In this document: in pieces, positions 7,283 to 49,899 of the stretch
How positions within the stretch are numbered: the stretch's first letter is position 1
Layout: every line of letters begins with the position of its first letter
Assembly: GCA_904063045.1 (NCBI GenBank)
Contig: CAJFCJ010000005.1
Coordinates: forward strand, 3,935,689-3,999,688
Length of the DNA stretch: 64,000 nt
Reading direction: 5' to 3'
Source: Dimorphilus gyrociliatus
Taxonomy: Eukaryota > Animalia > Annelida
Translations under genes and position numbers: made by a program
The notes under the pieces: model-generated
The model's input: only the letters and a program-made list of their open reading frames with translations
Told to the model about the DNA's origin: nothing
Database searches by the model: none

Positions 7283-10200
7283 ATGGGAGCTCTTTACGAA
7301 GACGTTGAGAGGTTCTTTGGCGATATCTTTGCCGCTTATGGGAGAATTTTAGCGAAATGGCCTTTTTGCTTTATAATAGCTTCAGCAGTTTTGTCTGGTC
7401 TACTTGGATTTGGTTTGTTCAAGATTCGTATGGTAACCGATGTTGAACTATTATATACGCCTATCGGAAGTGACGCTCAAAAGCATAGGGATTATCTTAG
7501 CAGGCATGCGATTTTCCTTAATTAAATTTCCATCACATACAAAAAATACGAAAGAAATAAGAAAAAGATTTCAATAGACAAAGTCATTACTATTTATAAG
7601 ACAACCGTCGTATTTATTTTTTTTTAAAAAAACAAAATGTTACCAAAAATTAAAAAAAATCGCATTCCTACTACTTTATTCACACGAAAATAACATCATT
7701 AACAGACTCTTTGAATCAAATTCTACTAAATTCTATTCCCATCAACAATTTTATGTTGGTCCTTACGCCGACCTCATTTTTACTAGACCTTTTGTTAGAT
7801 CTAATAATATCCTGATGGAGGATTCATTATCAGAAATTGATTATGTTATTGAAAAAGTTATGAATATAACGGATTATGAAATTGTATGTGCAAGAAACGA
7901 CGGTCAATGTGCTATTGACGGTATGGACTCCATACGAAAATGGAATAGAGAAAGATCAAGAGTTTGTGGTTTATCTGGTGCTAATAGCGACGCAGATGAT
8001 TATTTAGCTATAACCCACAAAATAGGCGATTGTGTCGACTTGGCTAAAGCCTTAAAAATTAGATTCTACTTAAGAAGGGATAACGAACGAATATTAAGAG
8101 ATTCAAAGGAATGGCAGAAGAGATTTATAAGTTTACTTAACAAGTTAAAATCTGAATTAAACTACACAGTGGTGAATTACGCCGCAACCGAATCGTTGAG
8201 TATTGAATTAAATGCCAGGGTCAGAGTTGATCTTAAAAAGTTTGCATTTACTGTTCTCATTATGATCGTATATACAACAATGGTAAGTTGTGGAGGGAAT
8301 TGGGTAACTAGTAGGATTAAAATGTCCCAAGCCGGAATTATAGCAGGCACGAGATTCTTAAGCTTTAGAAATAATAATGAAAAAAAACTACATATAGATA
8401 GAGTCATTTTGTAGTTTTATATCGACTATATACTATGTACAGTATGCAGTGGACACTTTTTAGTATATTTAATATATATTCACAAAACAATGTTTTTATT
8501 CAGCATATGCACTATAAATTATATTATGAATTAAACTATTGTATAAACTGTATACAAACTATATTTACGTAAAAAGAAACTGACCTATTTGTAGATAAGT
8601 AAAAAATATATTCTTAAAAATAGCTCATTTAAAAAGAATAGATAGTTTAATATATACAATGAATATACATATAAATCAACTATACAATAAAAGCTAGATG
8701 GATTAATTGCAAATAAACAACAAACTAAGAAAGTACAATTTACATGTTAATTAATTAACTCAATGAATCGTACAGTTCATTAGACTCTTACTATGATGGA
8801 AAAATATATAAATTATGAATAATTCTCTTCTATACGAATCTGAGAATCAATTCTCGGTTCTTTTATAGATCTATTCTAAATTAATAGATCATTTTATTCC
8901 CAGATATAATAAGATTGATACGTTTTATTGATAATTTAAGCTATTTTGTGGTTCATTAAGCGTCACATATTACAATTAATTAATATTGAAAGAAGATTGA
9001 TAACATTTTCAAACTTAATAATAAAGAATCTCGTTCCTACTCTTAATTAGCTCTCCTAGCCATTCTGGGTTCGTGTGGACTATTAAGTGTTCTGGAAATT
9101 CCTTTTGCCGATTCTTGCGGTGTCATGCCATTTTTAGTTTTGGGAGTTGGGGTCGATGATATGTTTATTCTTATGTCCGGTTGGAGACAAACAGAAATTA
9201 CATCATCCGTTGACGAAAGAATAGCTCAGACGCTCAGGTCTTCTGCAATTAGTGTTACTATTACTTCACTTACGGATTTATTAGCTTTCTGTATTGGGGC
9301 AACGACGCCGTTCTACAGTGTTAGATGTTTCTGTGTCTATGCTGGTAAGTAATTTTTCTATTAGACGGAATCGACGTTTTACCTGTTCTACCTTTTAAGT
9401 GAATTGTGATTGACCAATGTCAATATTTTTGTAAGTTATATCATTATTCTGCTCCTCCTACTACAATGGACTCATTATTTGGTACTTTTAATTTCTTTCT
9501 GCTTATAGCCCAAAGCAAGGCATTTTATGAATGCTAGAGGCCCAAACAATCTCCCCGAATATGTTTTTTACAACAGTGAAAAGAAGCTGAAAACGACCTA
9601 ATTCATTGCCTCTTCTAAGTTTTTAATAGTTGCTAATGGCATACAACATAGTCACAGTACGAAATAAGTCTGTCAATCTCCCATTTTTATCGTGTGCGAC
9701 AAACATCTGTAGAGACTAAATTGTAAACTATAAACGCCCGATTTATTTACGTAAATGACATAAATGTATAGTATGTACTTGAGGATCATAGAGAGGTGTT
9801 TACTCGGACAGGAAATGAAGAGAATCGTAAAGTAAAAACAAGACGGCGTATGGTAGTAATTTTCCTTCCCCTAACGAATATATCTTTTAGCTTATAAATC
9901 GTCTTCCTCGATTCCTTTTAGCTTATTAGTCCATCTTCGTGATTGAGCAGGTAGAGTGAAGAACGAGAAGAAATATAGACAAAGAACGAGAGAGAAAAAG
10001 AGAAAATTATAAAATAAAAACAAGACGTAACACTTTATAAAAAGCCTCTCCTACCTTTTCTACCACCCACCTTACCTCCTACTACAGTCGATTGTAGCAA
10101 AGATGTATATTTGTATATTTTATAATTTATATAGCATATATCTGAACGTATATTTATAAATTAAACTTTTTTCTGGGTAAAGGGTCACCCACTACGTAAT

Positions 10201-13200
10201 TTAAGCTTATACACGTAAAGTTACTGCTTTCGAGATATATTTTATGTTTGTATCTGTAAGTATGTGTGCACGTGTTTATTTCTAAGCTATATAGGCTTGA
10301 AAATCTACATATTATCCGACTTCGAAGAAATATTCCCTTTTCGATTGATTACATAGCACTATATTTAATTGTTTAACTCTTTACATAAACTCCACTCATT
10401 CTTGTATAAATGAATATTAAAGAAACAATAATTTGTTCTTTCTTTATAAAGGGGTAAGAAACAGAGTGTACTGTATCTAACCTTTTTTATGCGTCGTCAG
10501 GAATACTTTAATTCCCTCAAGTAGTTTCCAGTGGTATTTTTTATTTATAAATAATATTCATTAAGGTCCTCTTTTATTCTCTCTTCTTTCATCTGGTAAT
10601 CGAATTTCGTACATCTACACATTTTTATACATGTATACTGCATATACAGTATAATATATATATATATGTATTTATATATACTATATATAAAAAGCGTCAT
10701 AAATGTAAATGTATATAAAAAAAACTACTGTCAAACTAAAATTAGGTTTATAATTCTATCTTTTTGTCTTACATGAAAGGGGAATGTAGAGAACGATTTG
10801 TCGTAATGAGACGCTAATCTAAACTTGCTTAAGTCTCACGTTTTCTTGTCAGATGACACGTTAAAACTTATTGAAAAGTATAAAGGTTTTTCGTCTTCAC
10901 CAACATCAATTTTAGCCTTTTTCTATCCCTTTAAATTTGTATAATAGATTAACTAAGAAATTAGGTTGTTTAATATAATCCGAATGGATCGGTTTTACGA
11001 GACGTAGGATAAATACTGGATGATTAGAAGTAGAGCATTAGCGAAATACAAGAAATGAATAGCAAATTCCACTTTCGAAGAACTAGCGAAATTCTTTTAA
11101 TATTTTAATATAGTTTAATATTTGTATTATTATTATTATTATCAATTAGGCTATATTTATAGATATTAGGTGAATAAACGAGGATAGCCAAATATTCTCA
11201 GCATATAAAAGAAAGGGATATTGCAACCGTATAGGAGAAAATCTAGCGGAAAAAGTCCCGTTTATAATCGATCAACCTAATAAGATTAAGCAATGATTCA
11301 CTTTTGGCACTTTTTTGCTTCATAAACTCGATGAATCTTCTGAACAACACTAGACGATTCCTCTTTCTCCCTTCTCCTTTATATTGCAAAGAACATTCTG
11401 TTATTGTTTTCATTTTTTATCTTCACCACTCTTTATAGTTATCTTTAGTCTTTACTCTCTTCTCCACTTGTCTATCAGACAAATAAATAAAAGATTTTCT
11501 GCAGGCGTCGCCATCTTCCTCTGTTACTTCAACCAGTTGACCTTCTTCGCTGGATGTCTCGTGCTACACGCCCGCCGGGTTCATGAATCTAGGCATTGCG
11601 TCACCTGTGTTAAAACCAGCTCCAGAGTCGAATTGAGGAGTAAGGGAATGAATGAGGCCTACGTTCTTTTATGCAGCGGTCATCCTTCTTCCGCTAAGCA
11701 TGGCGAAGCGGAAACATTTTGCCAAAGAGTTCCCGGTGCTAGTTCAATACCAAAACTCCTCCTTACGAGGAATGCGAAATTCTTTTTCTCTTTCAATTAT
11801 ATAATTTCAATAATATATCATCATTTAAAATGCCAAACTAACAGCCAAATGCTAGGGTCGAAGGTCTACATCAGATTCGTTTAGTGTTTAACTCTTTCAT
11901 TCCTTTTCGTTTTTAAAATTCACACGATATTTAAAATAATAGAAGACTCTAAACAGAAAAATAGTGAAAGAATTAAGGGAACTAGAGAGAAGTAAGAGCA
12001 GAATAAATCTAATTCAAATAAATTCTCTACGGAACAGTTTAACACAAGACATGAGCTTAGCTATGAAGGTGTTCAATTGTAAGATTTTACTTATTCCCCC
12101 TCAAAACGGTTAAATTAATATGAAATATTATTGATCATAGATGAAATGATCGATTAATCATGCAAATGATTCTTTTACGGATAATCTCAAAATAAAAAAA
12201 TGAACGCGTCTAATGTATTTATTTATTTTTTCTTTATAAATAATTTATAGTTTTCATAGATTTTTAAATGCAGTGCTACTGTATTTCACTCTAAATCAAC
12301 AAAACCAATTCTTCGTTATTAACTCCGTCAAAATATCAATTTTTTTTTGTTTTCTGTTTTTTTTTGAAAACGAGACACACGAGGTTTTTATGTACTCTCT
12401 CTCTCTCTCTCTTCTGTTTTTACCCTTTTTAATGCAGCAGTACTACTGCAATTTAGATTTTCATTCGTAGTGTTAACTTGACGAATTCCAAATGTTTACG
12501 CAATACGCATTACTCAAATAATCCAACGATGGCGCTATCTAATTAGCTTAGCTAGTTTTGGCATTCTCATTGTAATAGGTTTAATGTTGGCTTATTCTTC
12601 ATTGGGTTTGAAAATAAATTGTCGAATATCATAATCGACGATAGATGGCGTCCTAAGATAACCCTCAAGTAGAATAATACGTATAATATTTATAACATAA
12701 TAATGAAAATTTCGCATCCCTCAGGCCAGTTAAAGTTGTGGTGTGTATTGCTTTCATAGTTTATCTAATTATTTCGGCATTTGCCGCATCTAAAACGAAG
12801 CACGGCCTAAAACTGGAAAAGGTCGTTTCGGAGAGTTCTTACTTCACTTCCTATCTGGAGGTTGACCGTCATTATTTTCCGCAATCAGGGCCAGTCATTA
12901 TGTTGGTTATTGATGGAATGTATGATTATAAAAAAGCTAAAAATCGTCAATTGCTAAAAGAGGTAATAGATCAAGCTAGAGCTTATGGAAATATGGATAA
13001 ATCCTATCAGATATCTTGGATAAGAAATTGCACTAACTTTGAAAATATCAGCGAATTCATTGAGCGAAATCCATCGTTTGAACAAGATATAGCTTGGAAG
13101 GATGATAGGATAATTGCGTCAAGATTCTATGTCAGATCCAGATGGGTATCAACTGCAGATGAGGAAGGGGATCTTATGAAATTTATGCGAGATACCGTTA

Positions 13201-14353
13201 TGAATGACACTAATGGGAATAAATTGATAGCGTTCAGTCCTCAATTTGTCTACTTCGAACACTATGTTTCCATTGTCAAGAATACATTGTTATCCGTCAC
13301 CGTCTGCATAATAGGAATGCTTTTCGTTGCTATTATGTTCATCCCACATCCAATTTCCATTACGTGTGTTGCCTTATCTATGCTATCCATAGTAATCGGT
13401 ATGTTTGGTCTGATGCATTTGTGGAATGTTGCTCTTTCATCAATAACCACTGTCCAAGTTATCTTATCGGTCGGCTTATGTGTCGATTTCACCGTCCATA
13501 TCAGCCATGCTTTTATGGCTGCAACTGGAAAGAATCGAAATGAAAGGGTCAGCACAGCTTTAAATAAAGTTGGCGTACCAATTCTAAACGGAGCTCTATC
13601 GTCTATTCTTGGTATTATAATGCTAGCTAGTGCTCATTCTTACATATTCGTCTCCTTCTTTAAGACGATGCTCTTAGTAATTGTTCTCGGTCTATTCCAT
13701 AGCCTGCTGGTTCTACCCGTACTGCTTTCCTTCATCGGTCCTAGAAGAACAAGCAAACCGAGAGTATACATACCAATATCTCCTAGCTCTAGAAGCATCC
13801 AACCAATGGAAGCTCCTAGAAGACCTTCAAGTTTGAGATGCTCAAATAATCAGAGGATTTATAAACAAGACAGCAGAGAGGATCAGGAACGTATATCGCA
13901 ATTCATAAATAAATTTAATCAAAAAACAAACACATCATTATCAAAAGAATATTATTATTTATCATTAAATTTAGCTAATTGATCATTTATAATAATAATG
14001 CTAATTAAAAAAATTGCGGAAAACGTTCCTACCAGGAATCTTACACAACTCCAAGAGAAAGCCCCCGCCGACAGTCGATACCATTAGTCAGATTCGATGT
14101 CAGGCCGAGAATCACTCGACAAGACGCAATGGAGGAGAGTAGTATCATTATACATCATGCCCCTAGTTTTCCTCAATTTAACGCTACAACTCAAACGGAA
14201 ACGCCCAGTGGATTAGCGGTTGGTATTCCAAGATCTATTTCGGCTGATGGCCGAACGATTTCACAAGACTCTAGAAGTGATGGTTTCTACAGCGCTACAG
14301 AAGAACTTAATGATAATGATAGTTTCATATCAGCATTTGGCTTCTTTACTTAA
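7283..14353 (+). CDS. PTCHD3: Patched-domain-containing (PTCHD3/PTR-like) RND-family membrane protein, 6 exons, ~966 aa
   Basis: Exons 7283-7503, 7706-8346, 9051-9344, 11505-11769, 12725-13886 and 14036-14353 total 2901 nt and stay in frame. Sterol-sensing TM4 MPFLVLGVGVDDMF and TM10 GLCVDFTVHISHAF, followed by GVPILNGALSS. Four junctions need GC or GA donors (see findings). Confidence 0.9.
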
Positions 14354-24324: not shown

Positions 24325-25953
24325 TTATTTTTTAACAGTTTTTTTTTGTTTAGTTGGATCATATGAATAGGTTTTTTGTATAGGAGCTAAACCAGCTTCT
24401 TTGAAATTGATGCTATCTACTCTTTGCCTATCTTCAATCTGAGCGGCAACTTTCGAGTTTTTTATTGCTATAATCAAAGAATTAAAATGATGTTAGTTGA
24501 ATGAAAAGTAAATAAAGTATATGAATATTTATTCTTACAATCTTTAAAGCCTTCCATAAACTTCTTTTTAGGTATACCAGAATTTTCATGTTTAACCATG
24601 ATTGGTATATTAAAGAACTGTCTAACATTGGGTATTTTCAAGAAAAGTACTTGAAATAATGATATAGTATTTGATGTAAACCAATAACAAAGCATAGCCT
24701 AATTGGGAATTCTCTTTAATGTCTAAATAAATTATAATTTAGTTGTTTACTTACCGTTGGGAAATTAATAATAAACGGAAATACAAAAATTGGCATTGCT
24801 CTCATAACCATCCTCATTTTAGGATTTAAAGCTGTTGATTTCACTCCATCAACGCCTAACTCAATTGTTGCCATAAGTGTTGCGCAAGTTAAGAAAGGAA
24901 GAGCGTAAAAGGGATCAACAACTGTTAAATCAGTAAACCACAGTATTCCTCCTGTCTTCAAACTGTCCACCGGTAAGTTAGCCATTTGTCTTACACCAAC
25001 AAAAACAGATAAAAATATTGGTAGTTGAGCTAAGGGAACCAACATTCCTCTTAGAGGTTTTACTTCATTGTTCTTCATAAAGTCCAAAAGTTCTTTGGCC
25101 GCTCTAGATGCTTTTGAATAGTAAAATATAAAATTAAAATATAATTATTCCTTGTATGAAAGATTTAAAATTACCGGCTACTTGATCGCCCATTAATCTC
25201 GCCTTTGAGAATTTGTCCTGGAGTCTTGTCATTGTTGGCATATTATTATGCATGTTAGCAGCATGTTTCTGAGCTTTAACAACCAAAGGAAATAGCGCCA
25301 ATCGTACACAGACAGTTCCTTTAAACATAAAGTAAACAATAAGTTAATAGAAAAGTCTTCATTGTTTAGTATTTATAAATTCATATTTTTCATCTTAATA
25401 TTCTATATTACCAATTACTATTGAGGTCCACCATGGTATATCCAAACCAACGTGTAAAGATTCCAATCCCCATTGCACTAATCCATTTGGTGTCCAACCA
25501 GCTAAACCTAAGCTCTGTAATGTTGGTTCTCCTAATGCAGTCAACACTGATTCTCCAGCATCTTGAATAGGTGGTACTGGAGGTTCGGGGATGTAACCTT
25601 GAACATCCGCTGGGACTGTTTCAGTGGTAGTACTCTATGTAAGAAAACGAAAATGATATAAGCCAAGTTTTTTTTGTGTGAGAGTAAATGAATACAACAT
25701 TGGCAATATTTAAATTCGCTCCATCAGCTTTTGTTGAATTAAATCGAATTGTACTTGCGGTTAGAACAACTACCCGGTTTTTTTGTAGTAAAGTTGAATA
25801 GTTATGGCTTTGTATTGGTCTTGATAGCTGAAATAGAAATAAATATTATTATTATATAACATACTTTTTCCTGATGAGCTGACTTACTGTTCTTGATGAA
25901 TTTATACAATTATAAAGTAGTTTCGAAAAGCAAGCACGAGTAGAGGCCGCCAT
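24325..25953 (-). CDS. OXA1L: Mitochondrial inner-membrane insertase OXA1L
   Basis: N-terminal presequence-like MAASTRACFSKLL, LGLAGWTPNGLVQWGLESLHVGLDIPWW, VRLALFPLVVKAQ, LAQLPIFLSVF..RQMANLPV, GGILWFTDLTVVDPFYALP and YWFTSNTISLFQ. Confidence 0.93.
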
Positions 25954-37844: not shown

Positions 37845-39640
37845 ATGAAAGTTCTAGGAATAATACTAGTGGCAATTCGTTAGTATTTTTAATATATCTA
37901 TGATTAAAAGCTTTAAAAAACTTGAATATATGAAAGTGAATAAAAAAAGATGACAATGTGTAAAATTTCGATTAAACAGCAGTTTTATTAATTGATTTAA
38001 CAATAAAATATATTGTGATTTGGTTTTATTATTTGTCTGAATTGATTTCAGCCTTGTCATGTCTAGCTGCAATTATCAAAGTACCAGAAAACTATGTCGG
38101 CAAAATAGACGATGATTTTACATTGGAGTGTAAAAGTAATGGGGAACAACGTGATATGAGATGGTTTAATAATAAAGTAAAAATGATAAATACTCCAAAT
38201 GGAGTAAAGGATGAATTTAAGAACAAATATGAAATTGTAAAAGAAGGAGGCAGGTAAAGAAATTTTTCAAAAAAAAATATTTCAGATAAGATATGAAAAC
38301 TGATGATTAATTGTAAATCTTTATATAAGAAACTTGTCGTTTACACCTATTGAAAATTTCTTTCTAGGTTTGACCTTATCGTTAAAAATCCAACTATTGA
38401 AGATGGTGGCATTTATCGTTGTATGGATGACAGCGAAGATAAAGAAGCCGACGCGATTCTTGTCAGTGAGTATATTGTTTATAAACTCTACCCTTCAAAA
38501 TGGAATTAAAAACCCTTTCTTTTTTCTTCCAGCTGAACCGTCTTATTCTTCAAAACCTGAGCGTATAATAGAAAAGCAGAACGTTACTCATACGTGCGAA
38601 AGTCTTATTGGAAGTCCTGAAGATATATCCAAGTACAATATTAAGGTACTTTTCCCTTTTATTTCCTTATCTTATCATTCACTTTACTAACTATTACAGA
38701 TGGAACTTCAATTAGGTGGAAAGGTTGTTCATACAGAAACTAATATTGAAAAACTTAGCAGAGTAACTAACAATCAACATAGACTCAAATTGGTAAACAT
38801 TAACGTTTATACATATCTTTTTTAGAAATATAAAATACTTGAAACAATTGAGACATTATTTGTTTTTATAGGTCTATAGCAGGAATGCTCTCTTCAACGA
38901 TAAAGATGTCAAATGCATTTTATCCGCATACAACCCAGACTTTAAAATTTCTACAAATGCTACTGTCGATATAAAATGTTGGCTAACAACTATACGTTAA
39001 ACACTTTTATTTATTTTTGTCAATTTGCAGATGGACCAAGAGATATGAAAATTGAACCATTTTCTCCAAATTCTGACCTATACATTGGTGACGTATTAAA
39101 TTGTACCGTTGATGCTAATCCAGATGCAGATATCAAATGGAAATCTTGGGTAAAAAACAATTGACATTATATATATATATATAAAAGTAACGTTTATTTC
39201 TATTTATTTAGATTCCTAGTAAACCAAATGTTGCTGGCAGAGATCTTGTCTTAACAAGACAACATGTTGGTTCTAACACGTAAGCAGTTGAATAATAAAT
39301 GAATAAAATTCAATGAATATATATGTAAACGTACGTTTATGTTTTGCATTTTTTGTTGAATAGATACGAATGCATAGCGGAAAATCAACCAAGTAACGTA
39401 GTCGAATCGATTAAGAAAAGAATTGAATTCACAGTTTGTAAGTAGTATACAAACAAATTTTTTTAATTGAAATTTATATAGTTTGTTTTCCTTGTAATAT
39501 ATTATACAGTATATTAATAAATTTTCTATATTTCAATAGTGGATCGAACCAGACCAGTTCAAGCTTCAAGTTCAAAAATTGCAACTAATTTGTTTCTGTT
39601 GTCATCCAGTTTATATTTCGCTAAAAATTTATTATTTTAG
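37845..39640 (+). CDS. Three-Ig-domain cell-surface protein with signal peptide and GPI-signal-like C-terminus, ~10 exons
   Basis: Signal peptide MKVLGIILVAIP. Ig1 FTLECK..WF...EDGGIYRC, Ig2 VTHTC...KC..VDIKYGP, Ig3 LNCTVDANPDADIKW...YECIAEN. Tail ASSSKIATNLFLLSSSLYFAKNLLF* with no cytoplasmic segment. Confidence 0.8.
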
Positions 39641-40036
39641 TTTAGACATGCTATTTAAATATTTCTAAATTTAATTAGAAGAAAATAGTGTTTTCAGTAC
39701 TTCATGTATACTGTATACAGGACATATATAATTTACACACACATATATATATATAATACTATTTTCTATTTTGTAAAGTAATGTCTTGTACAATTCACCT
39801 TCTATTATTTAAATCCTTTTTCTAATTAATAAATTTCCAAGTGATTCAAACATGTCTCTTATCATCGTTAGAATATTTTACTTCCTATTTGTTTAAACTA
39901 TTAGTTATAAAAGACCCCATCAACGGTTATAAATAGAAAATGGAAATTACGCGCTCTGTCTATCTAGGTGGGGTTTTGAGTCATATTTATAACCATACTC
40001 CCTAGCGCGACACTCATAACTAGGAAAGCCAGCAAC

Positions 40037-40716
40037 ATGAGCTATAATTTTGATAAAAAACCTTCCTATCCTCCTTCTGATAGTCAGGCTCCTCCACCAT
40101 ATAATCCTTCCGCTCCAAATTATAATCAACAGTTTGTTAGTATCTAGTTTTAATTTTTTTTCACTAGAAAGTAGAAAATATTTTCTAAAAACTACAGCCT
40201 CAACAGCAGCCATATCCTCTGCCTCAACAGCAGCCAAATCAACAGCAGCCATATCCTCAGCCTCAACAGCAGCCAAATCAACAGCAGCCATATCCTCTGC
40301 TTCAACAGCAGCCAAATCAACAGCAGCAAGGGGGAAATTCAAGCATTGTCAATACCAGTATCCAAATTGGTGTTCCAAGCACTAATCCTAATCCTGGGCC
40401 AGTTTCGCCTATGCCAATTATAAGGCAAGAGAGACAACATATTAATGATCATCTTGTGAGTATACCATCTCTAAAGTAGTTAAAGCATATACACACGTAT
40501 GCTTTCCTCTTTCAGTGGCTGAGTGTAGTCTCGATATTATTCTTTTTCCCTTTTGGAATTGTGGCTCTGATATTTAGTCTTTCGTGTAGCACTACGAAAG
40601 CCACTAATCCTGAAGCAGCGTATAGTTCTTCTAAAACAGCTCTCGGTTTTAGTATACTTGCGTACATAGCTGGAGCTGTGTGGATTATAATTGTTATTGT
40701 GGCTGCTTATAATTAA
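40037..40716 (+). CDS. CD225/dispanin (PRRT1/IFITM-like) membrane protein with Pro/Gln/Tyr-rich N-terminus, 3 exons, ~185 aa (not in the ORF track)
   Basis: Exons 40037-40135, 40198-40455 and 40516-40716 are all phase 0. C-terminus DHLWLSVVSILFFFPFGIVALIFS...AAYSSSKTALGFSILAYIAG matches the dispanin pattern DxL..S...L....P.GI.A...S......A...S..A. Confidence 0.8.
40198..40325 (+). repeat. Coding minisatellite, ~3 x 39 bp, encoding PQQQPNQQQPYP(Q/L)
   Basis: Repeated cctcaacagcagccaaatcaacagcagccatatcctc(a/t)g units. Confidence 0.9.
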
Positions 40717-41031
40717 TTTAAAACTTTTCGTGTGTTTACCATGTGCACTTGTAGAAAATGGTAAAAGACGGAAGTAAATACCTATAGAAAAAGTGTAAAT
40801 GGAACTTGAATAACAAGAAAGAATGTTAAATCTTAAAAAAAAATCTTAACTGAGTAACAGCCTTCTGAAAAGAAGTTTTTAAAGAAAAGTTGTATTGGCT
40901 TTGTATACGAGATGTATATTTAGCTTCTACTTTCGTTCTCTGTTTGCGGCGAGTTTCAAGTTGTAAATGTCAAACTACATTTATTTATTGGATATTAATA
41001 AATAAGTTTTTAATAGAAATAATTAATCATT

Positions 41032-44000
41032 CTAATAGGATTTTGTATTTTGAATTAAAAAATAATTTTCTGTACAAGTCCTTTCGAATAATGCCATTTT
41101 CTTAGTTTCTTCTTCAGGTAAGGAACTCCTTAAATAAGTATTCTTCTTTTGTCTGCTTTTAGCTTTTAAATAACAGTTCTTAAGCAATCTCCAAATGTGA
41201 GTCAGTATGATAAACGGTGGTGCAAGGGTAGGCCTATCGAAATATTCTTGAATCAAATTATATCTATAATATTTCCAAACTTTCTCTGAGTTTTCTTGAA
41301 CTCTTTCAAAAGTATTTGCGAACATTGCAATCAACAGATTTAATAATAGAACGTTTGTGATAACCATATATATGGCAAATAGAACAACAGCCAAAACAGA
41401 TTTTTTAGGGCAAGGATTATCGCTACCAATAGTAGAATTACAATTATCTGAATTTCCTTCTACGTGGTCGAGAAATAAATCGCCATACATTTGCCAGTAC
41501 GGTATATAAATAACATTCTTCAATAAACTCCAACTAGCGGGCGTATTAGGGAAGAGAAGAGCATGACTCGCTACTCCATAAGTGACTATAAATACAAGTA
41601 ATATAGCAATAAAGAAAAGTAAATCAGTTAACATTCTTCTTATCATAATAACTTTAGGACCAATATTTTCAAAGGCATAGAATACATGCAAAAATCTAAG
41701 GTAGAATGTTACTAAAGATATACAGTAGAAACTTCTGACCCACATAAAATGACGAATTGGTAGAGTATTTCTTATAATAACTGATACCATAAAGAGAAAG
41801 TAAGCGAGTAAGTCAAATTTATTCCATACGTTTTCAACATGTTTCTTTAGTTTTTTACCTAAAGATGGTGAATTTGTTGTTGCTATCTATATTTTAAATA
41901 AATGAAACAAAATCAACTCTATTCAAAATCAATTCTTATATTATATTTACTTGTCGAATCTCTTCTATAAATAATGTTGTTGACCATATCCATATAATAA
42001 ATTCAAAAGAACTAGGCCTATTATCTTTTGTCCATGGGTGTAGATCAGTGAGTACGAAATATGAGAATACTCCCAAAAAGATTATATAGGAAATCTGTAA
42101 GAAAGTACTAGGATAGAGAAAAAGAAAGTGGTAAAAAGATATTACCGTATGGCACCAGAATTTTGAAATGGGAGCTGTATAAAAGTATCTTAGCCTACGG
42201 AAAATGCCAATATGATTGTCTGTTTTATCAAAAATACGTTTTAAGTTAAATCTTTTTCCAAATCTTCTAAATTGATGATATCTATCTTCATCATTGTCGC
42301 TGATCATATCATTATCCTCATCGTCGCTATTCTTTTCAAAGGTTATCTGTTGTTTGGATGCCGAAGAATTTGTAAATTTGATTGAACCTCTCTTCCGGAT
42401 TGAATCTTCACTATTGCGTTCTTTTGTAAATTTTATTAAATACGGTATGAGTATTGGTAGTAATATAGATAGGAAAATACTCCATTGACCAGTTTCCAAA
42501 GCTATTTCACCTTTCCATATTATATTTAATTTTGTTTGGCAACACGAATGACTTATCAGATCCATTGATTGGAGCGAATAGCCTAAAGAAAGTACTGTTG
42601 AATTGCCCCAATCTGCTAATTCTCTTATAAGGAGCTTATGAGCGTAATTTTTATTTCTCCTGAAACATTCGTTCACTATACCCACAGCTTTCGATTCCCA
42701 TTCGACTGCTTGATTACTAAAATCTTGTGCTAAATCGAATTCCTGCTGTTTACGAGCTTCATTAGATAAACCTTTCATAATTGATGCTGCCGTTAAAGCA
42801 GCTCCAATATGATCTCTCCCAAGCTTCCAAAATAGAAAAGCAGTATTCTGTTTATTAAACGCTAGAGACCATAAAAACAAATCTCTCTCGGGAAGTTCAA
42901 CGGTAATGTTTTCATTAGTGGATTCTTCAATACTAGAATTATCATTCAGTTTACTTGCTTTGTTTGTCATGTATCTTTTGCTACTGTAAATATTCTCCGA
43001 TTCCTTGACAAAAGAACAGAAAATCTTACCAATATAACTTAAGAGTAAATCTGGTAACTTTTGTTTTAATTGTTTTATCGCCTTCTTCTGTATAGCTTTC
43101 CTAAGTAGGTTACGTAATAACTTAGCATTTGTTTGTCTTGATTCATCTTGTAAACTATTCCAATAGAGGTCTTGTAGTTGATCAACTCTCAGAAAATGTC
43201 GTAAGTAAACACTATTCTCAAGAAAAATTTGAACGAATTTAGCTTTATCTTGCATTAAAGATCTGACAAGTGAATTATCTAGACCTGTCGATACCCAGAA
43301 TAGATTATTTCTTCTAGAAAATATTTTCGTTCTTGCAATGTCGTGTCTATTGCATTCGATAGCTAAAGTTAATTGGGATTCAGGATCGGATTTATTAGCT
43401 TCAAACGAAGATATAAATATAGCTTGGTCAATTCCCTTTATCTTATCATCATCGTCAATTAGAAAGATTGTAACAAACGATCTTTTGTTCAATATTATCT
43501 TTATGTAGCTAAGACATTTTGGAAATTTATGAGGGTTGTTTATGAAAGCTTCTCCAAAGTTATATTCAACTTCTTTACTAAATTCACTCTCAAAATCCGG
43601 AGGGTATACAGTTTTACTTTCATCGTCAGGTACCATTGTTTTCTGATAAGCGTATGATATTAAATCAGCTGCTTTTCCAGAACCTTTTATCACCAAAATT
43701 TTCTGATCACTTTCAACTGCGGATGCTGCATTTTGAATAGCGTTTAAGCTTCCTTCTACTATTAAAGAGATAACTGGTACCTTAAAATTTTGCCTAAAAC
43801 TAAATGAGTATTTCTTTTTCTCACTAATATATCGTTGAAGACGAAATCTAAAGGGAATTTCAGACCCGTAACCACTTCCTTGTTTGTTTTTAACTAATAT
43901 AAAATGTGTATGATTATGGTCAAGAGGTAATATACGATTTTCCTGTTCTTCATTATTATCAGAATTTTTATTACGTCTATAATTAACCAGAAAACTATCT

Positions 44001-44715
44001 TTTGCTGCATGTTCGTTGACAAGAGATTCTTTATTTTCAATAACATCCCATGGAGCTATACCTAATGCAACAATATTACGTTCCGAATGAGGACAGAGAA
44101 AATTATGTTCACCAACAGCTTCGCCAACAAGTTTTGTTACTCCCGAACCTAATCCACCAGTAATTATCCATGCTTCAGTTGAAGATGCAGCCTTTATAAG
44201 ATCTCTTTTGAAGAAATTTTTTAAGTTTGTTTCCATAAAAAAGTCCCTTACACCTCCAATAACAGAAATAATCAATTTTGGAGGTTTTAATTTCCAATCG
44301 TCTTCAAAGAGTTGAGTCATTAAATCTGCACCGCAACTTCCTGATACTCCAATGTAAGATGCAGGAGTAGTAGCATCTAGGCCATAGCCCCTGAATTTTA
44401 TTTTACCTTTACAGGTTACATATTCACTAATAGGACGTTCAACTTCTTCAGCAGTTTCTTCAGTTGATTGCGGTATCTCTTCCTATAAAATTTTAAATTA
44501 TTCAAAGTATAATACAGTAATTTTATTTTTACTTGAAAGTAAACTTTGATGGTTTAAAGCATTTTTACAATTAATAAACAAAGAAGCTTGGTTTTGAATA
44601 TAAAAATTGCATTGTATATATAAGTATATAACAAAAAATAAAGGAAAGCGATAAAAGAACACTGATAAACTTTTTTTACATTTGATTTTAACGAAATCTC
44701 TTCTGATGTTTTCAT
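41032..44715 (-). CDS. TRPM-family cation channel (TRPM2-like core) with very short C-terminus
   Basis: Probable exon 1 at 44715-44680, then a large exon from 44483. SLOG/MHR motifs PKLIISVIGG, AWIITGG, LDHNHTHFILV, LFLWSL and YTAPISKFWCH. TM region IGPKVIMIRRMLTDLLFF, pore PYWQMYGDLF, NVLLLNLLIAMF, TRP box WKYYRY and PTLAPPFII. Confidence 0.93.
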
Positions 44716-45340: not shown

Positions 45341-46945
45341 ATGGCGAAAAAATGGTTAAGAATTGAAGAAGATAATTTAAAGTGTGTTATTTGTCAAAAA
45401 TTAGGGATTGATAAGGATCCACGATTACTATCTTGCGGTGATACATTCTGTTCGAGTTGTTTACAGAATTTTGCTAATTCTAACGAATGCGATAATCTAT
45501 TTACCTGCCCAAAATGTAAAGAGGATATTAAATGGCCAGAAAATGGTATTGATGGTATTCCTAAAAATAATCTATTCCAGTATTTGGAACAAGTTGATTC
45601 CAAGACGGATTGGTCAGGATTTAAAAATGAGAGTAATATGATCAAGTTTTGGAATGAAAGCGAAGGTAACATTATTAAAGATGTTAAGAATGGTATAGAA
45701 GAATTGTCAGATAATATACATAATAAGGAACAAGAACTTTTAAAAAGTATTCAAGAAACGTACAAGTCATTCAAGAGGAAATGGCGTGAGAATCAGGCCT
45801 ATTTACACTCTCTTACATTGACCCCAATAGACTTTGAAGGTGACGGTGAGAAGCTCTTCGAAGAAGTTTTATGGAACAACTACAAACTAGAGCATACACA
45901 AATCACATTTACATACGAATTAAACCTTAATCCTAAGTTTTATTTACTAAGGTCAATGGAGGAGGGAACTCCTATGAATATAACGTCTTGTAACGAAACG
46001 AAAAGAGCTGTTGATCAAGATAATTGTATAATTTACGAAGATGATCTAATATACGAGAAGAATAAGAATGAATTATTTGAATATTCATGTAAAGAATCAG
46101 GTTCATCAATAACGAAAATTCCATTAAAGTCGTCAAATGCTCTATTCGCCGTTCATAAAGGGGTCATTTATCAAATATATTGGAGAGAAAGTGGAAAAAA
46201 TACATCTGTTAGGAAAGATAGCGGAATCGAAACTTCTAGATTTCAAAATCTCTTATCATCAGTTGCTCAAGACGCTAGTCAATTATTAAATAGAAAAAAT
46301 TCAAAGAAAGATGGCACCACTCAGAGTATTGGCGAACATACATCGTCCGATAGAATATCTATCGAGAAATATGTAAGGAAGGAATGGCGAAAAATTGGTG
46401 AAATTCAACAAGATCAATCAACCAATGGAAAATCTGCTCTATTCGCTATTGGTCCAAAAGTATTAATTGTAGTAGAAGCTGGTAAAGTTTATTGTTTTCC
46501 TATTGATAGTGATGATGGTGAGAGTAAAAAATGGGAAATTGCCATTAAACACAACTACGATAGGGTTATCTACATACAAATTATAGTTGATTGTATATAT
46601 TTGATTTTAGAGAAAGGAGAAGAGAATATAAAAGATAATTTCTTATTGAAATATTCAACTTCCGGTTGTCTTTTACTTATGCATAGACTAAAATTAGAAA
46701 ATTTCAATTATAGAAATTGTTTTATATTGCCAAGTGAGAATATTATATTATTAAAAGAGAAAACCGTAAAGATTATATCACCATTTGGAAAAGAGTTGGA
46801 TGAAAAACGTTTGGAAAATCTTACAGGTAAATTTGATAATCCAGTATGGTTAAAGGTTATATGGACATTAAAAGAAGTATATATTTATGGTGTTTTTAAA
46901 CATAATGATACCAGCTTTATAGGATTGATGAAGTTGTATGGTTAA
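45341..46945 (+). CDS. Intronless RING-finger/coiled-coil (TRIM-derived) protein, 534 aa
   Basis: CVIC...DPRLLSCGDTFCSSC...CPKC followed by the TRIM-typical I.WPENGIDGIPKNN, a coiled coil and a beta-rich C-terminal region. No B-box seen. Confidence 0.8.
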   Translation: MAKKWLRIEEDNLKCVICQKLGIDKDPRLLSCGDTFCSSCLQNFANSNECDNLFTCPKCKEDIKWPENGIDGIPKNNLFQYLEQVDSKTDWSGFKNESNMIKFWNESEGNIIKDVKNGIEELSDNIHNKEQELLKSIQETYKSFKRKWRENQAYLHSLTLTPIDFEGDGEKLFEEVLWNNYKLEHTQITFTYELNLNPKFYLLRSMEEGTPMNITSCNETKRAVDQDNCIIYEDDLIYEKNKNELFEYSCKESGSSITKIPLKSSNALFAVHKGVIYQIYWRESGKNTSVRKDSGIETSRFQNLLSSVAQDASQLLNRKNSKKDGTTQSIGEHTSSDRISIEKYVRKEWRKIGEIQQDQSTNGKSALFAIGPKVLIVVEAGKVYCFPIDSDDGESKKWEIAIKHNYDRVIYIQIIVDCIYLILEKGEENIKDNFLLKYSTSGCLLLMHRLKLENFNYRNCFILPSENIILLKEKTVKIISPFGKELDEKRLENLTGKFDNPVWLKVIWTLKEVYIYGVFKHNDTSFIGLMKLYG

Positions 46946-48372: not shown

Positions 48373-49899
48373 CTATATGATTTCATGAACAACTACAGAT
48401 AAATTTGTTATATTTTTTGTATATAAAGTTCCATTACTTGTTAATTGTATTTCCCCTGGACTAAAGTTTAATTTCAAGTTATTCTGTTTCACCAGTTCAT
48501 TATCGAAAGCTTGAATTTGTGATTGTCCATTTTTAGTTAATAGGAAGCCTTCTCTTGGTAAATGTATTACTGAGTATACTTCGAAAGGTGAAGTTGACCA
48601 AGGTAGTATTCTGACTACACTTCCTGATTTCTTAGTATACATAACTAGACAGTTATTTCCTACACCAATAACATTTCCATCACTTAGTACGCAGGCTGTA
48701 AGAGTTAAATTTGCTTCACCCCAGCTTTGAGTTGTCCATTCCAATTTATCGTGGAAAATAAGGCTTACCGTTTGATTCTTCTTCTGAGGAGAAGATAAAA
48801 CGGCAATAGATACTTTTGCATCGTCCCTTACAAAGAGTCTCCATGCATTATCCACCTGGCATATTGAATTATACTTGATATTCATTGAATTTTTTAAATT
48901 AGACTTAAGTATACGTTTATTGCCTTCATCTATTGCGTAAATTGTATCATTTACTGTTATAGAAAAGTCGGTAATGAGCTTTGAGATGAACGTTTGTTTA
49001 CGTTGGCCATTCTTAAAGATTCTTATTAAGGAGCACGAATTTTTTGAATAAACAATTTGAACTAAACCATCATTCAAATATTTACAATGATTATACTCAG
49101 CAGATATTGATGCTATTTTACGAAATTTATGTATAGTTTCTAATGTAGGTTGACACCTTTTTATTTTTCGATCGTCGCCACTTTCGGGTTTTTTGGCGAG
49201 ATCAAAATTCAATGCTAGGAAAGACTGTTTAGTTGAGAAACCCTTTATAAAATTATCAGATTTTTTCTCCATTTCTTTCTCGTCAATATGATTGCTTTGA
49301 ATCTCTCTCCTTAATTTCTTAATCTCATTAATCTTGCGTGAATTATACTCTTCTATCTCGTCGTTAAGGTGTCCAACCTTCTCCTCTATCCTTTTATAGC
49401 AATCGTCTTCTGTTTCTTTTAATCTTTGGCGTAACAATTCCACTTCTTCTTCAATGCGTCGTTCGTAAATATCCAGTTTAAGAGAGTAGGCCTCAATAGC
49501 TTTTTTAGTTTCCATTTTATAGTGACTGGAAAAGACTATCCGACATTTGGGTGGTTTGTGTTTATCAAGACAATTCAAACATAAAATATCACTCTTACAA
49601 ACTGAGCAAATTATAGTGGGACTGATATGAGTTGTGTTGTGAATAGAGCACGCTGATTTATTGGTAGATTTTTCTGAATTGATTGTTGAAGAACGCCTGG
49701 GCAAGCCATAAATTCCTTTAGCAGACAGCCTTACTTTATTTTTACAAACTGGGCAACAAATTTCGTTATTCGATTGATCAGTATCCAGTTGATCGAGACA
49801 TTGCAGACAAAAATTGTGCTGACACGGTAAAATTCTAGGTTGTCTTTTATCCATAGATTGGGTACATATTCCACATAGCAGCTGTGTATTCGACTCCAT
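48373..49899 (-). CDS. Intronless TRIM-like protein (RING, B-box, coiled coil, divergent beta-propeller-like tail), 508 aa
   Basis: CGIC...PRILPCQHNFCLQC...CPVC. B-box-like CSIH...ICSVC...LCLNC..KH. Coiled coil, then beta-rich repeats such as FSITVNDTIYAIDEGNKRILK (NHL-like). Confidence 0.85.
   Translation of the reverse strand: MESNTQLLCGICTQSMDKRQPRILPCQHNFCLQCLDQLDTDQSNNEICCPVCKNKVRLSAKGIYGLPRRSSTINSEKSTNKSACSIHNTTHISPTIICSVCKSDILCLNCLDKHKPPKCRIVFSSHYKMETKKAIEAYSLKLDIYERRIEEEVELLRQRLKETEDDCYKRIEEKVGHLNDEIEEYNSRKINEIKKLRREIQSNHIDEKEMEKKSDNFIKGFSTKQSFLALNFDLAKKPESGDDRKIKRCQPTLETIHKFRKIASISAEYNHCKYLNDGLVQIVYSKNSCSLIRIFKNGQRKQTFISKLITDFSITVNDTIYAIDEGNKRILKSNLKNSMNIKYNSICQVDNAWRLFVRDDAKVSIAVLSSPQKKNQTVSLIFHDKLEWTTQSWGEANLTLTACVLSDGNVIGVGNNCLVMYTKKSGSVVRILPWSTSPFEVYSVIHLPREGFLLTKNGQSQIQAFDNELVKQNNLKLNFSPGEIQLTSNGTLYTKNITNLSVVVHEII

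Follow-up and report, generated by a model that had tools for sequence, protein, structure and literature searches.

Non-GT introns with terminal inverted repeats in a Patched-family gene of the annelid Dimorphilus gyrociliatus

How is an intron recognized when its 5' splice site lacks the T of the GT dinucleotide? This question is raised by a gene of the annelid Dimorphilus gyrociliatus, which lies in a stretch of 64,000 nucleotides (assembly GCA_904063045.1, assigned to this species in PMC10212961; contig CAJFCJ010000005.1, positions 3,935,689 to 3,999,688 of the forward strand). We refer to this whole stretch as the window and count all positions within it. The gene occupies 7283-14353 on the + strand and is expressed, and its predicted product is a Patched-family PTCHD/Ptr-like RND protein with a sterol-sensing domain (SSD). 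A preliminary description of the DNA, made from its letters, had proposed that four of the five introns use non-canonical donors, GC in introns 1 and 2 and GA in introns 4 and 5, with a canonical donor in intron 3. Here we report that introns 2, 4 and 5 are spliced at these non-GT sites, that the ends of all four non-GT introns can pair with each other across the 5' splice site, and that this pairing probably assists splicing.

Splicing at GC and GA donors

We examined sequencing runs aligned over 8250-14249, a range that takes in introns 2 to 5; intron 1 (7504-7705) lies outside it. None of the runs is recorded as RNA. Run X2 (2017, study P2, filed under another organism label) and run X3 (2020, study P1) were judged to be transcriptome-like from their behaviour on the locus, and run X1 is genomic, with 278x coverage. 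A further run, X6, yielded only short, AT-rich, spurious pieces. The depth of X2 was 125-181 in exons versus 0.4-8 in introns 2 and 3.

Contigs assembled from X2 and from X3 join the exons on either side of introns 2, 4 and 5, so that each of these junctions is seen in two runs from two studies. The joint 8344>9049 (two ambiguous letters) corresponds to GC..AG at intron 2, the joint 11767>12723 (three ambiguous letters) to GA..AG at intron 4, and the joint 13883>14033 (six ambiguous letters) to GA..AG at intron 5. GT-AG cannot be reached under any placement of these three joints, and the placement given in the preliminary description is the only one that keeps both a G at +1 and an AG at the 3' end. 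The same contigs skip the canonical GT-AG intron 3 (joint 9343>11504), which provides an internal control for spliced RNA. In the genomic run only the unspliced form was found, with no joints for introns 2-5 and no variant letters. Variant letters at +2 were absent from X1 and from the RNA-like runs, and two independent assemblies of sister-species loci, L001 and L002, are identical to the window at +2, keeping the order GC, GC, GA, GA. Because the genomic run and the sister assemblies agree on these letters, assembly error is excluded. We conclude that introns 2, 4 and 5 are removed from the mRNA at G+1...AG, after an exonic AG. Frame, homology and conservation point to GC-AG splicing of intron 1.

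The positions and motifs that the preliminary description had assigned to the five donors and five acceptors all proved correct (Table 1), as did its observation that -2A, -1G, +1G, +3A and +5G are invariant across the four non-GT donors. The contigs use these sites for introns 2, 4 and 5 rather than GT donors elsewhere. A GT alternative that it had offered for intron 4, at 11736, is unused in all assembled contigs; the same is true of an in-frame GT at 11857 (AGG|GTCGAA), which would add 29 amino acids.

The introns are not all removed with the same efficiency. An unspliced contig covering intron 4 (11741-12752) was assembled beside the spliced joint in both RNA-like runs (X2 record 12, X3 record 18), and read-through of this intron would meet a stop at 11882 and is predicted to yield a truncated protein with the SSD only. 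Introns 2 and 5 gave almost no unspliced signal in X2 or X3, implying that efficiency varies among the introns, with contig depths as a rough guide. The preliminary description had also raised the possibility that the clustering of non-GT donors in one gene controls splicing efficiency, and for this the unspliced intron-4 contig is the sole hint. A single X3 contig carries an A>G difference at 12283, within intron 4, which may be a single-nucleotide polymorphism or RNA editing.

What, then, distinguishes the sites that are used? The non-GT donors match the U1 consensus CAG|GTAAGT at 5-7 of 9 positions; +4 is always a pyrimidine and +6 is variable. A perfect donor, ATG|GTAAGT, lies within exon 2 at 8283 (8280-8288), and the GC donor of intron 2 follows 64 nt later. 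The perfect donor is unused in the assembled transcripts, is out of phase with the acceptor at 9050, and is conserved as GTAAGC in L001. The preliminary description had suggested that the spliceosome of this lineage accepts C or A at +2 because contacts with U1, U5 and U6 are otherwise strong. The tolerance is borne out, but the explanation is not, given the partial match to the U1 consensus. The weak U1 match and the bypassed GTAAGT argue that it is a helix, described next, and not U1 affinity that marks the splice site.

Predicted pairing between the intron ends

In each non-GT intron, the sequence from exon position -2 to intron position +12 is complementary to an arm near the 3' end. Introns 1, 2 and 4 have perfect terminal complements of 10, 11 and 10 nt (from +3 to +12/13), and the helix of intron 5 is in two parts (6+7), GAACGT/ACGTTC and CGCAATT/AATTGCG. 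Intron 3, the canonical one, lacks a terminal helix and has only a 5-nt chance match, and its duplex energy is at background. Between the first 20 nt and the last 60 nt, the calculated duplex energies of introns 1, 2, 4 and 5 are -13.9, -15.4, -11.5 and -15.9 kcal/mol, compared with -4.9 for intron 3 and means of -3 to -5 kcal/mol for interior 20-mers. With the exon bases added, the non-GT introns of both species reach -20 to -27.5 kcal/mol. When introns 1 and 5 were folded whole, the helix was retained in the minimum free energy and the centroid structures (z about -3).

The register of the pairing is the same throughout. In a table of the four introns in two species, positions -2, -1, +1, +3 and +5 to +11 are paired every time. 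Positions +4, +6, +9, +10 and +11 vary among the introns and the partner arm compensates, the sole exception being +4 of intron 4 in L001. A C at +2 is always mismatched; an A at +2 is paired in three of four cases. The acceptor is the first AG past the 3' arm in all eight cases, at a distance of 5-38 nt in the window. When the left end of each non-GT intron is compared with its reverse-complemented right end, both sides read (C/T)AG|G-N-A-Y-G..., and the core consensus of the arms across introns is GNAYGNGA... The window has four occurrences of the motif AGGNAYGNGAWWT, compared with 0.24 expected, and all four are at the arms of these introns. The helix around each non-GT 5' splice site had escaped the preliminary description, as had the lineage-specific status of these introns.

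Scans of the window and of L001 found no introns of this helix class apart from those of the PTCHD gene, and Rfam gave zero matches in the window. Two candidates were rejected: a pair at 1253/2222 is a poly-A/T artefact, and a 10-nt perfect complement at 25531/25045 on the minus strand falls within coding sequence of an OXA1-like gene, in two of its exons, and is attributed to chance; the GT introns of that gene are normal.

To what extent is the pairing conserved? We aligned the gene over its whole length with L001, the syntenic locus of a sister lineage (Logan SRR23372228). The covariation set consisted of the window and L001; P0057 (L005) and P0071 (L006) were left out as belonging to an outgroup lineage or being too short. 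Identity between the window and L001 is 93% in the 5' arms and 77% in the 3' arms, versus 52% in intron interiors and 82-88% in exons (Fisher p = 3e-13). Among the predicted pairs, 56 are unchanged, two have changed on one side and still pair, two are compensatory and five, all peripheral, are broken. The clearest compensation is at position -6 of intron 1, where T-A has become A-T: a synonymous change in a Leu codon is matched in the 3' arm. The C at +4 of intron 2 is T in L001, and the pair persists as G-U. The inverted repeat of intron 4 reaches about +22 in L001 (8096-9080), roughly twice its length in the window, which would fit the gradual decay of a terminal repeat that was longer in the ancestor. 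Covariation between the species is thin; the strong covariation in these sequences comes from the comparison among different introns.

The gene, its relatives and the gain of the introns

The six exons (Table 1) sum to 2901 nt, or 966 codons and a stop. Family searches were run with each exon separately. Exons 3 and 4 together place the gene among those with a sterol-sensing domain. Residues 183-356 of exon 5 align with residues 976-1149 of PTCH1 in the PDB (E = 1e-32), with NPC1 next (E = 1e-27) and Dispatched weaker; the matched region is the second transmembrane bundle, homologous to TM8-12 of PTCH1 and NPC1. The public protein at this locus (P0001 in NCBI nr and UniRef, assigned to contig CAJFCJ010000005.1) has 360 amino acids and equals 12900-13982. 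It is thus a single-open-reading-frame model of an exon 5 fragment that runs past the donor of intron 5, and it lacks exons 1-4 and 6.

Table 1. Exons, introns and terminal helices of the Patched-family gene (positions in the window)
Feature	Position	Strand	Details
Exon 1	7283-7503	+	ATG at 7283, starts MGALYEDVERFFGDIF; N-terminus matches L003, L005 and Helobdella L007 from residue 1
Intron 1, GC-AG, 202 nt	7504-7705	+	donor CAG|GCATGC; basis: frame, homology, conservation (outside the read-covered 8250-14249)
Intron 1 helix	5' arm 7498-7515 x 3' arm 7656-7673	+	duplex -21.1 kcal/mol
Exon 2	7706-8346	+	transcript contigs span 8250-8344, then join at 8346/9051
Intron 2, GC-AG, 704 nt	8347-9050	+	donor CAG|GCACGA; joint in X2 and X3
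Intron 2 helix	5' arm 8349-8359 x 3' arm 9024-9034	+	11-nt perfect complement
Exon 3, sterol-sensing domain core	9051-9344	+	Pfam Patched SSD E = 6e-32; Sterol-sensing E = 3e-28
Intron 3, canonical GT-AG, 2160 nt	9345-11504	+	donor CTG|GTAAGT; joint in contigs
Exon 4, SSD end and linker	11505-11769	+	Sterol-sensing profile positions 114-151 of 153, continuing exon 3; X2 contig 11504-11770
Intron 4, GA-AG, 955 nt	11770-12724	+	donor GAG|GAATGC; joint in X2 and X3
Intron 4 helix	5' arm 11767-11781 x 3' arm 12708-12722	+	AG 5 nt past arm
Exon 5, second extracellular domain and second transmembrane bundle	12725-13886	+	PDB matches; 79 homologues
Intron 5, GA-AG, 149 nt	13887-14035	+	donor CAG|GAACGT; joint with 217-nt flank in X2 and X3
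Intron 5 helix	13887-13892 x 14023-14028; 13897-13903 x 14012-14018	+	both parts kept in L001
Exon 6, unconserved C-terminal tail and stop	14036-14353	+	open reading frame joined to exon 5 in transcript contigs

We then asked whether relatives have the same introns. In the outgroup contigs L003 and L005, with about 58% protein identity, exons 1 and 2, the boundary of exons 2 and 3, and exons 4 and 5 are each contained in one open reading frame. Introns 1, 2 and 4 are therefore absent from both, and intron 3 is the sole intron in common; the contig P0004 of a relative has the same layout. L003 and L005 hold two introns that are missing in Dimorphilus, one inside exon 2 and one at LVLG|VGVDD, and the latter is also present in Helobdella. 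The Helobdella locus (L007) lacks introns 2, 4 and 5 and shares the position of intron 3. Because intron 3 alone is shared with the outgroups, the four hairpin introns are lineage-specific and the canonical intron 3 is ancestral. On this comparison of gene structures, introns 1, 2, 4 and 5 are lineage-specific gains.

Where might they have come from? Terminal inverted repeats (TIRs) stand at the ends of the non-GT introns and include the exonic AG, as in introners and miniature inverted-repeat transposable elements (MITEs). The repeats most likely derive from a mobile element with TIRs, introner or MITE-like, that created these introns after the dinophilids split from other annelids, an origin to which we give about an even chance. 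The right arms mostly hold a T opposite +2, which points to a GA donor in the founder and a GC donor as a later improvement; this suggests that GA was the original state. An origin from hAT elements was considered and dropped. The arm start YAGGNAYG resembles the termini of Ac, but it departs from the rule YARNG at its fifth position, and an 8-bp duplication is missing.

In the outgroups, a Prp3_C/RWD gene lies upstream of both orthologues (L003 3677-8402 and L005 6002-10696). Elsewhere in the window, 24716-25650 on the minus strand holds the OXA1/YidC-like insertase gene, whose introns are of the ordinary GT kind. A TRPM-like channel gene (38300-44320, minus strand) has a 794-amino-acid single exon with SLOG and TRPM2-like domains, and it is adjoined by two long single-exon RING-finger open reading frames, at 45341-46942 (+) and 48376-49899 (-).

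A proposed structure-assisted recognition and its alternatives

How could the repeats serve splicing? We think it likely that introns 1, 2, 4 and 5 are structure-assisted spliceosomal introns with terminal inverted repeats, of introner-like or MITE-like origin. According to this model, two or three bases at the exon end, together with intron positions +1 and from +3 to about +12, would pair with the arm, which lies 5-38 nt before the 3' splice site, with +2 usually in a mismatch, and the first AG beyond the arm would serve as acceptor. The helix would thereby place the 5' splice site beside the branch and acceptor region. It would most likely assist or partly replace the U1-type step that defines the 5' splice site, thereby making T at +2 dispensable; G+1, A+3, G+5 and YAG would still serve the catalytic core, and a helicase would open the helix for U6 after early donor definition. 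The use of an ordinary YAG as the first AG, together with the invariant G+1, A+3 and G+5, makes the major spliceosome the likely catalyst. In intron 5, a CTAAT-like branch candidate ahead of the 3' arm was noted by eye. A bolder proposal is that these introns are self-defining: a transposon-derived helix in cis would take the place of the duplex that U1 small nuclear RNA (snRNA) forms with the 5' splice site, and would offer the donor to the tri-snRNP near the branch and acceptor. We hold this to be possible but doubtful.

Several points weigh against the structure-assisted model. We infer the function of the helix from conservation, and its core pairs are nearly invariant between the species, so that the covariation among introns could stem from unlike founder repeats. 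If positions +1 to +12 are in a helix, U1 and U6 have no access to the 5' splice site until the helix is unwound, and its effect could be inhibitory or regulatory; intron 4 is partly unspliced. Nonsense-mediated decay could hide minor use of the internal GTAAGT at 8283, given that the site is out of phase. The reads covered introns 2-5, and intron 1 is supported by sequence. As for the transposon origin, the direct repeats at the junctions are just 2-6 nt long (CAG, AG, AGG, CAGGAA) and overlap the AG|G consensus; no target-site duplication was found beyond them, and no repeat adjoins the right arm. The four intron interiors resemble neither one another nor the remainder of the window, and no extra copies were found in the 84 kb scanned (the 64-kb window and L001).

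Could the introns be ordinary U2-type introns, handled by a permissive spliceosome through strong remaining donor positions, with the repeats as inert relics or coincidence? We consider this unlikely. The invariant -2A, -1G, +1G, +3A and +5G and the ordinary YAG acceptors speak for it, as does the same signature in the GA/GG donors of the copepod Eurytemora affinis, where no structure has been noticed (PMC5714493). However, the arms are conserved above coding exons, and no other role is known for the 3' arm; the two arms of one intron match each other although the arms differ among introns; and the perfect GTAAGT 64 nt upstream is skipped in favour of sites with 5-7/9 complementarity to U1, a pyrimidine at +4 and a variable +6. 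We attach only a small probability to the idea that the arms are sequence motifs, bound by a protein or a variant snRNA, or that they form a hairpin by which splicing is regulated or held back. In other systems, splicing is inhibited when a helix covers the 5' splice site, and this idea would account for the arm consensus across introns and for the unspliced intron 4 assembled in both RNA-like runs. Nevertheless, a pure sequence motif has no need of the compensation between partner arms seen among introns, and introns 2 and 5 are hardly unspliced despite strong helices.

A non-spliceosomal removal of the introns, whether by helix-guided RNA cleavage and ligation or by somatic excision of a transposon from DNA, is very improbable. 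The 5' cut does fall at a fixed place in the helix, the 2-6-nt direct repeats resemble excision footprints, and the RNA nature of X2 and X3 is a guess; but the 3' cut, at its varying 5-38 nt from the helix, is always at the first YAG, like spliceosomal scanning, the canonical intron 3 is skipped in the same contigs, and the 278x genomic run holds unexcised copies only. An artefact, whether from a letter wrongly assembled at +2, from a pseudogene or from a gene model with wrong joins, would fit the truncated 360-amino-acid public model that reads through intron 5, yet it has almost no probability left: there are no variant letters, two sister assemblies agree, the open frame is intact, the exons are 82-88% conserved and spliced transcripts exist. 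For introns 2-5 the artefact is refuted.

Other intron classes and processes were also rejected. The donors, G[CA]A[TC]G, are not U12-type (/RTATCCTT, with a branch site TCCTTRAC placed 10-20 nt before the 3' splice site), and a TTCCTAC after the arm lacks the TTAAC core, lies at -5 to -36 and is unconserved in L001. Mirtrons, short introns of about 60-100 nt that form a pre-miRNA hairpin over their full length, do not fit introns of 149-955 nt with a terminal helix of 12-20 bp. Nor are these stwintrons or nested introns, as the sequence from +2 onward does not start with GT. Editing of +2 by ADAR or from C to U was dismissed, since RNA equals DNA at and near the donors and A-to-I would yield GG, not GU.

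How do these introns compare with known ones? The genome paper of the species makes no mention of non-canonical splicing. Among the papers searched, we found nothing beyond a minor-intron survey that links Dimorphilus to non-canonical splice sites, and no report of this intron class in annelids. The closest published description is that of the introner elements of Amoebophrya: non-canonical introns in which inverted repeats of 8-20 nt form a hairpin of the 5' and 3' intron ends, with direct repeats of 3-5 nt overlapping the exon/intron boundaries, read as MITE-like and strain-specific (Farhat et al., 2021; PMC7789003). In that dinoflagellate, however, thousands of introns are involved, splice positions vary relative to the hairpin, often with no G..AG, and U1 components are apparently missing, whereas in Dimorphilus G+1 and AG are strictly kept and the 3' arm lies inside the intron, the AG following 5-38 nt later. 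In Eurytemora affinis, about 12% of donors are GA/GG, constitutive, with an obligate exonic AG and A at +3; they mostly occupy newly gained, lineage-specific positions and upset automated gene models (Robertson, 2017; PMC5714493). The GA donors of Dimorphilus resemble these in their exonic AG, their +3 A and their new positions, and the G-non-T donors of Oikopleura are grouped with them. In contrast to Eurytemora, where no associated sequence or structure was noticed, every non-GT donor of the Dimorphilus gene sits in a conserved helix.

Non-canonical introns derived from MITEs in Fritillaria borealis were reportedly described by Henriet and co-workers in 2019. In this tunicate, transposon insertion is the proposed source of many non-GT/AG introns, which the major spliceosome handles (Henriet et al., 2026; PMC13326754). 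The Fritillaria introns are mostly AG-AN and make up the majority of the introns of the genome, with adaptation through U2AF and the N6-methyladenosine (m6A) of snRNA; those of Dimorphilus have G[C/A]-AG boundaries, and neighbouring genes have mainly canonical GT introns. The nonconventional introns of euglenids may be removed by a non-spliceosomal mechanism. Their borders are non-GT/AG and their ends are brought close by pairing near both ends (PMC12501133). These protist introns differ from those of Dimorphilus in their borders and in the register of pairing. Finally, pairing inside an intron is familiar from yeast and from long introns whose splicing is assisted by structure. The zipper stems of yeast shorten the effective distance from the 5' splice site to the branch point, but they begin downstream of an intact GUAUGU, exclude the splice site and are not known to be tied to non-GT donors.

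The new elements are exon joints in transcripts at three non-GT introns of a single gene, the rule that the acceptor is the first AG after the arm, the consensus donor at 8283 that splicing passes over, the intron map of the outgroups, Helobdella among them, and the truncation of the public gene model. The results describe annelid GA-AG and GC-AG introns that are RNA-verified and constitutive, with a structural signature by which they can be predicted from sequence: a 5' splice site within a helix and an acceptor at the first AG past the 3' arm. The non-GT introns explain why the public model is cut to 360 of 966 residues, and similar errors are likely in other genes of a genome that serves as a reference for 'conservative' genome compaction. 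Recent gains of this kind conflict with the low rate of intron gain reported for Dimorphilus gyrociliatus, and they would extend to spiralians a mode of gain from TIR DNA for which the animal examples reported until now are essentially confined to tunicates. They also make it testable whether RNA structure can replace U1-type recognition of the donor. If the helix does act as a substitute for U1 in cis, mobile DNA could create working animal introns that have no canonical donor.

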